Shown: positions 14,873-20,263, numbered from the stretch's first letter. The stretch is 64,000 nucleotides of DNA from Utricularia gibba (GCA_002189035.1 NEEC01000023.1:744001-808000), one strand, 5' to 3'. Made by a program: numbers and translations. The notes: a model not told the origin generated them from the sequence alone.

Positions 14873-14946
14873 GGTCCCGTAGCTCAGTTGGTTAGAGCGT
14901 TGGTCTTATGAGCCGAAGGTCGCGGGTTCGAGCCCCGCCGGGACCA
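14873..14946 (+). tRNA. tRNA-Ile, anticodon UAU, intronless nuclear tRNA
   Basis: GGTCCCG/CGGGACC acceptor stem, A box TAGCTCAGTTGG, anticodon loop CT-TAT-GA (14907-14909), B box GGTTCGAGCC and a downstream T run (Pol III terminator). Confidence 0.97.
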
Positions 14947-15166
14947 TTTTTTCTGTTGGTGTTAGATCGGACTCCATGTTTTTTTTTTGTCATTAATTTA
15001 TTTGATGAAGCTCGCTCGCTCGCTCGCTGATCCATAGTGGGTATTTTAGTTCCCGAAACGTCTGCATATGAATAATGTCTCCCTTATTATTCAATGCATA
15101 AGAAGCATTTAGCTGGATGCGTCAAGCACAGCATACTACAGGTTCACGTTGTGGGTAGGAGACAAG

Positions 15167-18100
15167 TCAACCAGTGTTCTGGAGTCCGGCAGCAACGCCC
15201 TTCATGGTCAGGATCAGAGTGTCCTCCAGCCCCGGAGCGTAGTCGCTTGTGGGATTCAGCTTCACCAGCTCCGCGGCCGACTTTGAGGCCTCCATGTACT
15301 CCTTGGAGATGTGAGGCCTCAACTTCACATGGTAGTTCGGGTCACGAATCCTCTTCAATGTGTAGGCTTGGCAGACGTTTAGTGTGGTGATGTGAGAGTG
15401 CCGAAGCTTCAGCTGCTGCTTCAGGCAGAGATCGCCTTCCAGGAGATCCTTGTGGCCAGCAATCTGACAGGAAAAAAAGCATTCTCATGAATGAAGGATA
15501 AGGTATCATTCACATAGTAGAGGGAGTGGAGTTGCTTCCCTACCTGGAGGAGGAGATTCTTGGTTTCCTCGTAGTTGGCTCTGAGCCGCTCACCAAACGA
15601 CCAGAGCTCTTCGGAGACAAGGAGCTTGTCGTACAGTGCGGCGATGCCGGGGTCGCCTTTGGCGAAAACCATCTCAACCAAATCGATGGTGACTCTGAAA
15701 AAGGGCCACTCGTTGTACATGTCCTGAAGCATTTGGAGGTTCTTGGGGTCCTTTTCTATGGCATACTTGAAGGCGCCACCAAAGCCCAGCCACACAGGAA
15801 GATGGAACCTTGTCTGTGTCCAGGCAAAGATCCATGGAATGGCCCTCAGTGATTCGATGCCGCCACTTGGCTTTCGCTTCGAGGGGCGACTCCCGATGTT
15901 CATTCGACCATATTCTAGTTCTGGGGTGGCCTGAGAAGATACATGAGAGAGATAAACAAGTTAGTTCTGCAGTGGACTCACTATATGTGATGATGCTATG
16001 TGGATGACTTACAAGGCGAAAATACTCCACGAAACGAGGTTCCTTGAAGACAATGGAACGATACTCCTCCGTGGCAACCACAGCAATTTCGTCCAAAAGG
16101 GCTCGCCATTCGGGTTTCGGGGAAACCGGAGGATGCATTCCATGTTCTAGAGTAGCAGCAGTGAAACGCTGCAGTGTTCTGAAGCAGAGGTGCTCCTCCC
16201 CGAATGACTGCTCGATAACTTCTCCCTGAACTGTCACACGAAGGGAACCATGGATGGTTTCTGGGGGCTGTGACAGAATAGCTAGATGGGTTGGTCCACC
16301 GCCTCTCCCGACTGTTCCACCCCTTCCATGAAACATGGTCAGCTTCACTCCATACTCTTTAGAAACTTTCACGAGCTCCTCCTGAGCCTTGTAGAGTTGC
16401 CATGCCGCAGAGAGACGACCGGCATCTTTACCAGAGTCGGAGTACCCAATCATTACTTCTTGCTTCCCATTGATACGGTTTTTGTACCAGTCGATAGAGA
16501 AAAGACGAGCAACAGCAGCAGGAGCAGCCTCGAGATCAGCAAGTTTCTCAAATAGCGGCACTACTCGTAAAGGCTTATTCACATGGCATTCACGCTGCAG
16601 GAGCTCCACAGCCAGCACATCTGAGGGGCTGTGGCCATTGAAATGATGTATGCACCAAAGCAGTCGGATGGGAGTTCTGCCAACACATGAAATGTTTCGA
16701 GAACATCCGCAATCTCTTCAGTTGTGGGAAGGTCAGGCCCGAACAATGGGCGTTTGCCACTAAGTTCTGATAGCAGCCATTCTTGCCTGCGTTCCTCAGA
16801 CCACTCCTTATAGGAACCTATTTCCAGGTATCTTGTTATAGCATCCAGAACATCAGTGTGCCTCTCTGATTCTTGCCTTATGTCGAGCCTCACGAGCGAC
16901 AGTCCAAAGGTGGACACTTGCCTTAGAAAATCAAGAAGACTACCATCAGCTATTGGTCTATCGCCACAAGCACAGAGAGACCTGTAACAAAGCTCTAGAG
17001 GTTCCAAGAGCTGTATGAACAGAAGAACAAGCTCAGCTAAGTAGGAAAAAAAAAAAATCATTCACAATATCAAATTCTTCAAACAACAAATGATTTTACC
17101 TGCTCTACACTGGTGTAAGTTGCTTCTTCAGGAATATCAGATGTCCCGTTTGCTAACAACTGGCGAGCACGCTCGCGTGTCTCATAGATCTTGTCCCGCA
17201 CATCACCAAGGATTACTCGATAAGGCTCACTTGGAGGAATGATTTTCCAAAATTCTGCAGCACAGTGGGAAATAAATGCTCTCCCTGATTCATATAGTTT
17301 GAGAAGCTTTTATGACTTACCAATAAAATGCTTTGCATCTCGCCTTGAAGACCTGTGGAGTTCATGTGCACGAATGCTGAGTTCATCACTGCAGCGCCAC
17401 ATGGACAACTGGAACAGAGAAAGGGTCAGATGGAAGCAGAAAATACAGCTGAAAACAAAAACCCCTATTGTGCTGTATACCTCAAACATGAGATCCTCTA
17501 TCTGGGAATAGTACATATTAGCAGCCATCATTCTTGCCAACAAGCATACGTCCCTGGTGACCTCAGGTGTCACTCTGGGTTACCTGTCCAGAAAAAAGGA
17601 GTCAAATACCAAAAGTTTTAGTCAAACAGCGAAGGCAATCCGTCTTGGAAAGAACACAATTAGGGGTATTGAGAAGCGCTGTCCAAGTTTTTTCAAGCAA
17701 ACAACAGCAATGAAAGATTGCCTAAAGAACTGTATACCATCACGATCTCCACCCATCCAAGAAGAGAACTGAACAAGAGGAGCGTTATATGGAATGCGCT
17801 CATTGATGCCAATATTCTTCAGTGCAGTATCTAGACGACGCAGGAATTTGGGAACCCCCTTCCATATTGTTTCATGAAAATAACTCATTCCTGCCCTCAT
17901 TTCATCTTGAGGTGTAGGAGGAGTTCTCCGGATTTCATCAGTTCGAAAAGCCGCTTGAATCTGTAAATAAGAGAAAGAAAGGCATAATGCAAGTGTTGAT
18001 GCATTTGTGGCATCTGAGACAGCCTAGAGAAGGAGGTAGCTGATAATTTACCTCTCTCTGCAAAGACTCATCAATCTCCTGCTTATCATCTGGTGTAATG

Positions 18101-19015
18101 TCTTTGGCGTACAATTGGGTCAAGCAATTTCTTATCCTAAATGAGACATAACATGACGAGTGAGAAGAGAAGAAAACAACGTGGAAGTAAAATGCATGAA
18201 ACATTTTAAAAACTCCAACCTTCCATGCTTTTGAAGCAATGATCTTCTCACAGACTGAGTAGGATGGGCTGTCAATACAAGATCCACAGTTTGATTCTTT
18301 AGTGCATCAAAAACTTGTTCAGGGGATATTTTCAAATCACCCACAAGCCTCTTGAGGGTCTCTTCAATGTCTGATTCTGTCATTGCATTGTTTTCATCTG
18401 TGTAATCGCCCTTTTTCCGTTTGTCTCGTCGACGATAAGCATTCTGTACCTCCTCAGCCAAGTTAGCCAAGCTAAGCATGTGGGAGAATGCTTTTGCAAC
18501 GACAATGGAGTCCCCAGGATCCAAACTCGTTAGAACATTTCCAAGTTCCTCCAACTTCCTGGGATCCTGCTTGCTCTCATATTCAGCCGAAAGCTCGTAG
18601 CACTCTTGGACCTTAAAGTTAACAAGTCATAGTATCACGAAAGTTACCAGCGAACCAGCACAGAATCACATGAATAAACCGCTAGACAGCTCTGGATTTA
18701 TAGGGAATGGAAGATTTATGGAGGAAAAAAACATTGAAAATCAAAGGTTTGTCTTGAAAGCTAACATAAATTCTCATAACCATCAAGATCAGATTTTCAG
18801 CACCATGATCAAAATAATGACCCCAAAAAATTGAATACTCCACTTACTGTTTCTCTAAGATCTTCTCCATGCAAATCCTGAAGAATATCAAGAAACCGAT
18901 CCAAGAGCAAGGCATCATACTCTATTAGGTGGTCATCCTCAGAAACTTTCCCAGGAACCAAAAGCCTCAACTGCGCATCAATGGATTGCATACTTTCCAG
19001 ATTCCTCGAAGCCAT
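15167..19015 (-). CDS. PPC: Plant-type phosphoenolpyruvate carboxylase
   Basis: 10 exons: 19015-18848, 18611-18220, 18136-18052, 17960-17738, 17583-17481, 17408-17321, 17254-17100, 17010-16013, 15930-15544, 15463-15167. [48 protein letters not shown] and QNTG* motifs. Two -1 indels in G runs (17577-17579, 16625-16628) are judged assembly errors. Confidence 0.97.
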
Positions 19016-20263
19016 CAAGCTCGTTTCTCTCTATCAAATCCCAGTCAAAGGACACCCCGAGGGTTAAAAAAAAAGGCCCATTTGGTCCTTAATAAAAAAC
19101 AACATCACTGGATCCACCCAATAAAACAAACAGTAGACACAGAGAGATGATCAAAACAGATACCGAGAAGCACACTCTCACAGACAGAAAAATAAAAGGG
19201 GTGGCTTGTGAAAAGGGTGTCACCTGATCCGGGCGACTGAGACTCTTCCGATCAAAAGCCGATCAGATTGTGCGGAGGACTAGAGAGGGAGACAAAGGTA
19301 CAAAGGGGGGTGGCGATAACTCCGGAGGCCAAAGCAGGAGGAGTGGGAGGTCTTCACAGGCCTAGCCTTCTAGCAGCCAACCAATATATATACACTCACT
19401 GAGTCCCCTCAGTTCTCATCGTCAGAATCCATTTGGAAAATCACATTTATCAGCTTTTGGCTGCTTCCAATTTATGCTAAACCTTGCCCTTTTTACCATC
19501 ACGACGATGGCTCACACTAACCATCCTTAAATCGTGATTAATTACCTTAATCTTCATCATTATTCAAAATCACCATGACTTCCGAATAGCCAAAGAATAA
19601 AGGAAAAGCTTAACCCACCATACACACATTGTGCCCATATTTCCAAACGTCCTGTCCAGCATCTAACCATTGACAATATTCTTTGATTAAAAATAAACAA
19701 ATGATAAAAAGTTCGGAATTATCTTAATGTACAATAAATTATTTAAATATTTCCATAAAAAAATAGATTATAAAAAATCGCATCCGCTTCGTCACATTCT
19801 TTATTAATTTCGAAATTAAGCTTTCAGATTTCCCACTAATTTCCGTATTTTGTTTTATTGTAGATATTTATTGTTTTAGAGAGTTCTGGTTGTCTACTTG
19901 TCAGCCACGGAGGTGAACCGGATTTTCCCCTCCTTCGGAGCTCCGCGGCCACGAGAATCGACATTTTTGTGGCGTTTAACGCAAGTTGCGTGGTTGGATA
20001 CGAGATCAGGGGCGTTTGTGAGGAGTTTTGGGAGTGTTCCGTCTTTTTCAGGTCGATCGAGATCTAGGGTATTCATCGGACTTGGATCCTGCCCTATATT
20101 GGCAGTGTTTCTGGATGACTTTCGTGTTCTCACATCATGTCTGCTCTTGAATGTGAGTTTTTCCAAGGGCTGTAGTGTCTGTACCTTGGATTAGGATTGG
20201 TCCCGTGAGTCGCTCCACGGTTCGCTTTAGGATCCTTTGTGGAGATTGGGTTGAGTTTACTGA

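Follow-up and report, generated by a model that had tools for sequence, protein, structure and literature searches.

A transcribed phosphoenolpyruvate carboxylase gene of Utricularia gibba with six substitutions in a 13-residue stretch beside the predicted inhibitor pocket

A stretch of 64,000 nucleotides from the genome of the bladderwort Utricularia gibba (GCA_002189035.1, NEEC01000023.1:744001-808000; hereafter the window, with positions counted from its first letter) contains on its minus strand, at 15167-19015, a gene for plant-type phosphoenolpyruvate carboxylase (PEPC), and a run of 13 codons in its last exon (codons 879-891, 15392-15430), beside the inhibitor pocket, departs from other plant PEPCs at six positions. 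On balance, we favor the view that this is a functional, transcribed, anaplerotic PEPC of the plant type in which the inhibitor-pocket stretch would have been altered in two steps, most likely with the effect that inhibition by malate and aspartate was weakened or retuned. The underlying observation, which goes back to a preliminary description of the window made from the sequence alone, is confirmed and robust, and its interpretation is partly supported.

The remodelled stretch

Residues 879-891 of the bladderwort protein show the differences P879L, Y880C, R884Q, R886K, D889H and Y891H, with R888 kept among them (residue numbers are the gene's own and coincide here with the Flaveria trinervia numbering). 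Exon 10, which encodes the stretch, can be aligned end to end with the solved Arabidopsis PPC1 and PPC3 chains, and translation together with this alignment reproduces exactly what had been described, namely six substitutions in 13 residues and, at 15415-15413, a CAG codon for Gln in place of Arg884. The other codons concerned are those of L879 (15430-15428), C880 (15427-15425), K886 (15409-15407), H889 (15400-15398) and H891 (15394-15392), and the retained R888 is encoded at 15403-15401. Also retained are R641, Q673, K829 and N963 (the equivalent of N964), and residue 774 is Ala (WIFAWTQ); the earlier reading that the remaining ligands are kept and that the C4-specific Ser is absent thus agrees with the residues of the spliced protein. 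Both marks of C4-type enzymes are missing, residue 774 (780 in maize) being Ala rather than Ser and residue 884 being Gln rather than Gly, and because neither Ser774 nor Gly884 is present, the enzyme is not classed as C4-type.

The full combination of six residues was found nowhere else in about 190 full-length proteins, 120 C-terminal fragments and 56 metagenome loci. None of the fragments carries it, the closest of them being 84-87% identical to the bladderwort sequence; the metagenome scan yielded 80 plant PEPC loci, of which the 56 with a readable motif all keep R884 and Y891, and no close relative was found among them. It is a guess that Y880, R884, R888 and Y891 occupy one face of a helix.

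Integrity, transcription and selection

As assembled, the coding sequence contains two 1-bp frame breaks, located in the C-runs at 17579-17577 (within GNPRV) and 16628-16625 (within APSD). Assemblies of four runs, two of RNA and two of DNA, were compared with positions 15100-19100. An extra base behind 16624 is present in all four; an extra base behind 17576 is present in the DNA contig X5, and the RNA contigs X1 and X8 read gat-ggt-aac-ccc-aga over the joint of exons 4 and 5. Because the missing bases are present in these public DNA and RNA contigs, both frame breaks are homopolymer errors of the assembly and not mutations. With the two read-supported bases restored, the product comprises 965 codons, and all catalytic motifs are intact in the spliced protein. 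In gene models built on this assembly, the two coding deletions would split the gene or turn it into an apparent pseudogene. A third 1-bp homopolymer deletion of the assembly lies at 19054, in the 5' leader of the gene.

Transcription and correct splicing of the gene are shown by the RNA contig X1 (3,236 nt), which lacks all nine introns and has no mismatch to the window in any exon. Over exon 10, both X1 and the DNA contig X6 are free of differences from the window, and for the 120 nt around the motif, eight of eight sampled words occur in 15 runs, which come from six studies of the years 2011-2024. The remodelled stretch is not an assembly artefact; it is borne out by data independent of the assembly.

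In the runs of X8 (RNA) and X5 (DNA), labelled as the same organism, the gene is present only as a variant that is about 1.4% diverged and has intron indels. Because these runs contain nothing but the variant, a separate accession or a cryptic lineage is more probable than a paralog. Among the 24 exonic differences listed between this variant and the window, 21 are synonymous and three are conservative non-synonymous changes (D941E, N550K and E454D, the variant having K550 where the window has N550), and none falls within 15392-15430. Omega is about 0.02 in comparisons with Genlisea and Castilleja, in which synonymous sites are saturated (pS 0.70-0.76). Given the 21:3 ratio, the low omega and a terminal branch of ordinary length (0.059 versus a median of 0.046), the gene is under strong purifying selection and a gene-wide relaxation is excluded. 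Lack of expression and relaxed selection, both named at the outset as findings that would speak against the proposed interpretation, are thereby removed, the former by the spliced X1 mRNA.

Phylogeny and order of the changes

The nearest protein is M569_05291 of Genlisea aurea (P0321), which is 92.3% identical and forms the sister of the bladderwort protein within Lamiales (Shimodaira-Hasegawa-like approximate likelihood ratio test, SH-aLRT, 98). The bladderwort PEPC is the ortholog of this protein and stems from a Lamiales clade that normally has Pro-Tyr at 879-880. The Genlisea enzyme has Gln884, encoded by an identical CAG codon, and keeps P879, Y880, R886, D889 and Y891. Because Genlisea has the same codon but the remaining five residues unchanged, R884Q is best placed before the split of Genlisea and Utricularia, and the other five changes later, on the bladderwort branch. 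Synteny with the Genlisea contig gave no signal beyond the PEPC gene itself. The contigs L001-L009, considered as further close relatives, were rejected, having only 74-79% DNA identity and no synteny.

With Castilleja and Erythranthe as reference, parsimony assigns 28 substitutions specifically to the bladderwort lineage and 26 to Genlisea, and 17 are shared by the two. Residues 879-891 hold five of the 28 bladderwort-specific substitutions versus none of the 26 Genlisea-specific ones. A clustering scan returned p=0.005 with uniform sites and p=0.025 when sites were weighted by their variability, and five substitutions in this particular conserved stretch were obtained in 0 of 100,000 weighted trials. 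The clustering of substitutions in the 13-residue stretch exceeds chance.

The derived residues shared by the Genlisea and bladderwort enzymes comprise Gln884, the loss of a basic residue at position P-3 of the regulatory Ser11, and 15 others. The serine motif itself, S11-IDAQLR, is present in the bladderwort protein; it lies in exon 1 (18848-19015, minus strand) in the context LESMQS(11)IDAQLR, with Ser11 at 18985-18983 and Ser8, the P-3 residue, at 18994-18992. Position P-3 is thus Ser here (ESMQS) and Thr in Genlisea (ETMQSIDAQ; contig L010) versus the normal EKMAS. Since Lys or Arg occupies P-3 in 170 of 172 full-length plant PEPCs, the acid-base pair that precedes the serine is missing from the bladderwort enzyme; judged by every membership test other than this pair, the protein is a plant-type PEPC. 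In the clade of Genlisea and Utricularia, the loss of the basic residue at P-3 and R884Q are inherited jointly. PEPC normally becomes less sensitive to malate when its N-terminal serine is phosphorylated. We hypothesize that the two regulatory changes, at 884 and at P-3, are connected, and the loss at P-3 would be in keeping with an enzyme less reliant on the phospho-switch.

Distribution of the substitutions among plant PEPCs

A residue-by-residue survey was carried out on a panel of 188 full-length plant PEPCs, mainly from terrestrial species. Position 884 is occupied by a residue other than Arg in nine of these proteins. Apart from Genlisea, no fewer than four C3 lineages have Gln884, represented by the carnivorous Sarracenia purpurea (P0268), Datura (P0324), the parasite Cuscuta (P0329; here together with K886) and two copies of Olea (P0356/P0357); Arg is otherwise replaced by Tyr (Henckelia), Met (Iris) or Ser (one wheat isoform). 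Leu879-His880 is typical of a whole Lamiales paralog clade that includes Salvia, Rehmannia and Sesamum (P0313, P0314, P0318, P0266, P0299; loci L003, L004), and because this pair belongs to the sister paralog clade, P879L in the bladderwort PEPC is a parallel change. Cys880 recurs in Tarenaya and Solanum, Lys886 is common, and His889 is seen in Iris, Apium and Papaver. At position 891, by comparison, all 188 panel proteins have Tyr. On a tree of 177 proteins, positions 879, 880, 884, 886, 889 and 891 changed 3, 10, 7, 14, 10 and 2 times, respectively, with five of the changes on the bladderwort terminal branch.

The preliminary description had regarded a wide occurrence of the same residues in ordinary C3 relatives as a point against its interpretation. 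This is partly the case: each change is found singly elsewhere, Q884 in Datura, Olea, Cuscuta and Sarracenia, and the combination is unique. What comparison of the sequences adds is that R884Q and the P-3 loss are common to Genlisea, that R884Q is found in C3 plants as well, that the five other changes are confined to the bladderwort, and that Y891H affects a residue invariant in the panel.

Elsewhere in the protein, three further lineage-specific changes fall on residues with a panel conservation of 98% or more, namely K151I (about 18329-18327), R335S (about 17374-17372) and A622S (about 16363-16361), the last of these near the monoubiquitination site Lys628.

Functional interpretation and alternative explanations

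Arg884 serves as a clamp on the inhibitor to which it provides an additional hydrogen bond, and in Flaveria the R884G replacement confers about 3-fold malate tolerance, measured as IC50, which is reversed by G884R (PMC3586729). The equivalent change in Arabidopsis PPC1, R886G, raises the Ki for malate from 0.37 to 8.15 mM, that is, 22-fold; R886 of this enzyme hydrogen-bonds the malate ligand Q675 and places a positive charge near malate, and Arg886/887 of PPC1/PPC3 is, in addition, part of a second citrate/malate anion site 9.5 Å from the canonical pocket (PMC13646687). Desensitised PPC1 variants show a root malate release that is up to three times higher (PMC13646687). By analogy with this mutagenesis of Arg to Gly, reduced inhibitor affinity is the most probable effect of Gln884, because Gln removes the charge. 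To our knowledge, only one other residue besides Arg884 has been shown to convert PEPC, by itself, between C3 and C4 behavior.

The history that we propose would begin before the divergence of Genlisea and Utricularia, with the replacement of Arg884 by Gln and the loss of the basic P-3 residue at the phospho-serine switch. On the bladderwort branch only, P879L, Y880C, R886K, D889H and Y891H would then have accumulated while the rest of the protein remained strongly constrained. The outcome would be a higher Ki for malate and aspartate, possibly pH-dependent by virtue of the two new histidines; the five later changes could weaken the inhibited state further, render it pH-dependent, or compensate for the first step. 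Catalysis would be unchanged because all catalytic motifs and the direct ligands R641, K829, R888 and N963 are retained. Of the earlier proposal that a feedback-tolerant PEPC evolved on a C3 backbone, the loss of Arg884, the Ala774 backbone, the preserved ligands and the intact gene all stand; what does not is a single event.

Several observations weigh against a weakened inhibition. Gln is still able to donate a hydrogen bond; the retained direct ligands suggest that inhibitor binding may still be selected for; and D889H, by which a negative charge adjacent to R888 disappears, could make up for the loss of charge at 884. Because Gln884 is also present in the C3 plants Sarracenia, Datura, Cuscuta and Olea, this residue alone is neither a mark of C4 or crassulacean acid metabolism (CAM) nor unique, and some of its carriers, such as Datura and Olea, are unremarkable C3 plants. 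A literature search for Gln at position 884, 886 or 890 yielded nothing on PEPC and no kinetics for Gln884, and the statement in the preliminary description that Gln is found here in some C4 grasses has no backing in the papers searched. Formal evidence for positive selection is absent, inter-genus synonymous sites being saturated (pS 0.70) so that no formal test applies. The AlphaFold2 model of the Genlisea ortholog, with a mean predicted local distance difference test score (pLDDT) of 49.7 and values below 50 over residues 874-965, is too poor to place the six residues.

Some of the same facts can be read as near-neutral or compensated drift, whereby regulation would be essentially normal, the pocket having tolerated R884Q or needed compensation after it (for example, by D889H), and malate sensitivity would be near that of other C3 PEPCs. 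The occurrence of all six changes singly in ordinary plants, the retention of the direct ligands and the want of formal evidence for positive selection are in line with such drift, yet we consider it rather unlikely: Genlisea, which has Q884, has acquired no further change in the stretch over the same time span in which the bladderwort acquired five, Y891 is otherwise invariant in the panel, clustering in so conserved a stretch is improbable by site-weighted chance, and Arg-to-Gly changes at the 884 site shift Ki 3- to 22-fold. That the coding sequence in the window has two 1-bp frame breaks could also be taken to indicate a pseudogene undergoing decay, or an artefact of assembly or sequencing. 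This can be dismissed with near certainty, given that the missing C residues are present in the read sets, the spliced mRNA is open over 965 codons, the variant differs by 21 synonymous to three non-synonymous changes, and the motif recurs in 15 runs.

Weakened or retuned inhibition could be linked to the bladderwort lifestyle, with a desensitised PEPC that feeds malate or other organic acid to the traps or takes part in a C4- or CAM-like refixation of carbon underwater. Deregulated AtPPC1 variants, which release up to three times more malate (PMC13646687), the Ala774 PEPC used by the C4 cycle of submerged Hydrilla (PMC13331804), and the co-inheritance of the P-3 change and R884Q in the Genlisea and Utricularia clade would be compatible with such an adaptation; that as much as 25% of the primary production of Utricularia goes into its traps (PMC6297986) is context for a trap role and not evidence of it. 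We nevertheless find the adaptation improbable, as Q884 is also found in non-carnivorous, non-aquatic plants and a literature search on Utricularia and PEPC revealed nothing that ties Utricularia to PEPC-based carbon concentration. The CAM, carbon-concentrating or trap role initially suggested thus finds no link to PEPC either in the sequence evidence or in that literature, and the ecological story for this variant is speculation. We know of no C4 cycle in Utricularia. Still less probable is that effector specificity was altered instead of plain desensitisation, for instance, by loss of the second anion (citrate/malate) site or by pH gating through histidines. The same arginine is shared with the citrate/malate site 9.5 Å off the canonical pocket (PMC13646687), and two histidines and one cysteine were introduced within 12 residues, but the argument is purely inferential.

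The bladderwort gene represents a natural, selection-tested C3-backbone PEPC without the clamp, with five neighboring residues, among them the otherwise invariant tyrosine, and the context of the phospho-switch altered as well. The series from canonical Lamiales through Genlisea to the bladderwort offers a ready-made test of inhibitor-site retuning without harm to catalysis, and the gene would provide the first molecular hint on the regulation of anaplerotic carbon flow in the lineage of Genlisea and Utricularia. Should the enzyme prove to be normally inhibited, Arg884 would be less decisive beyond Flaveria, maize and Arabidopsis than assumed. Deregulated C3 PEPCs are now being sought for a higher output of organic acids and carbon fixation in crops (PMC13646687).

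His891 in aquatic plants

Outside the bladderwort, the only named species in which we found His891 are Zostera marina (KMZ58048.1, P0383) and Victoria cruziana (CAN6484011.1, P0235/P0385), in both of which it occurs together with Lys886 (KQRLKLRDAHITT). His891 also occurs in P0043 and P0086, two fragments without a species name, one of them near-identical to the Victoria sequence. All three named carriers are aquatic, a coincidence recognized post hoc in a panel with no other submerged species. In a quick tree, the Zostera and Victoria proteins pair weakly (SH-aLRT 81), and their His891 may have one origin or two. It is conceivable that the allosteric site of PEPC was retuned convergently for life 'underwater'. 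His891 and Lys886 would then have arisen independently in Utricularia, Zostera marina and Victoria cruziana and, in Lentibulariaceae, would have been added to an enzyme that lacked the Arg884 clamp and the kinase-recognition base, resulting in weak or pH-gated malate/aspartate feedback suited to the way in which submerged tissue or traps deal with carbon and acid. We regard this scenario as unlikely.

Gene structure and neighboring features

The PEPC gene extends from the ATG at 19015-19013 to the TGA stop codon at 15169-15167 and consists of 10 exons, all on the minus strand, which are separated by nine introns with GT..AG borders that are spliced out in the RNA contigs X1 and X8. All five exon pieces scanned matched the Pfam family PF00311 (PEPcase), with E values from 6e-15 to 3e-94 and covering profile positions 28-919, and the spliced protein shares 88-92% identity with the plant-type PEPCs of Lamiales. 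Downstream of exon 1, with its regulatory serine, exon 2 (18220-18611) holds the catalytic His172 of the TAHPT motif and is followed by exon 3 (18052-18136) and by exon 4 (17738-17960), which ends in WMGGDRD-G. Exon 5 (17481-17583) includes the C-run at 17579-17577 that is one C short in the window, so that GNPRV is broken; next come exon 6 (17321-17408) and exon 7 (17100-17254). Exon 8 (16013-17010) encompasses the Lys628 region, the GRGGTVGR641GG loop and Q673, along with the second C-run (16628-16625) that lacks one C in the window. Exon 9 (15544-15930) encodes the C3-type Ala774 (15825-15823) and Lys829 (15660-15658). Exon 10 (15167-15463 including the stop, with coding positions 15463-15170) specifies the C-terminal 98 residues and contains the remodelled stretch; the protein ends AAGLQNTG, with N963 in the C-terminal QNTG tetrapeptide.

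About 220 bp past the PEPC stop codon, ARAGORN identified a tRNA-Ile gene (anticodon TAT) on the opposite strand (14873-14946, plus strand).

Comparison with known systems

The system closest to the bladderwort PEPC is its ortholog M569_05291 of Genlisea aurea, which resembles it in Gln884 (CAG) and in the loss at P-3 but would have undergone the first step only. The C4 PEPCs of Flaveria trinervia and maize (R884G and R890G, respectively) likewise have the Arg clamp replaced and the four direct ligands kept (PMC3586729); they differ in combining Gly with Ser774, whereas the bladderwort enzyme has Gln, Ala774 and five more changes nearby. Zostera KMZ58048.1 and Victoria CAN6484011.1, from distant lineages (a seagrass and a water lily), share His891 and Lys886 with the bladderwort protein but keep Arg884, P879, Y880 and D889. 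In the aquatic Hydrilla verticillata, Hvpepc4 serves a C4-type cycle despite its C3-type Ala774 (PMC13331804), and it is in this residue that the likeness to the bladderwort enzyme lies. The pitaya enzyme HuPPC2 naturally has Val instead of Arg or Gly at 884 (PMC7569800) but comes from a CAM cactus, belongs to another isoform type (934 aa) and lacks the cluster of neighboring changes. Finally, the R886G and alr variants (A651V, G678S, T778I) of Arabidopsis PPC1 show that a C3 anaplerotic PEPC can be desensitised to malate by changes around the pocket, with a greater output of malate in planta (PMC13646687). These are induced or engineered single changes, unlike the natural ones described here, and the alr positions (A649, G676 and T776) are unchanged in the bladderwort PEPC. 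Judged from its residues, the bladderwort enzyme is predicted to be functionally most similar to such desensitised C3 PEPCs, exemplified by AtPPC1 R886G, and to the natural variants in which residue 884 is neither Arg nor Gly.

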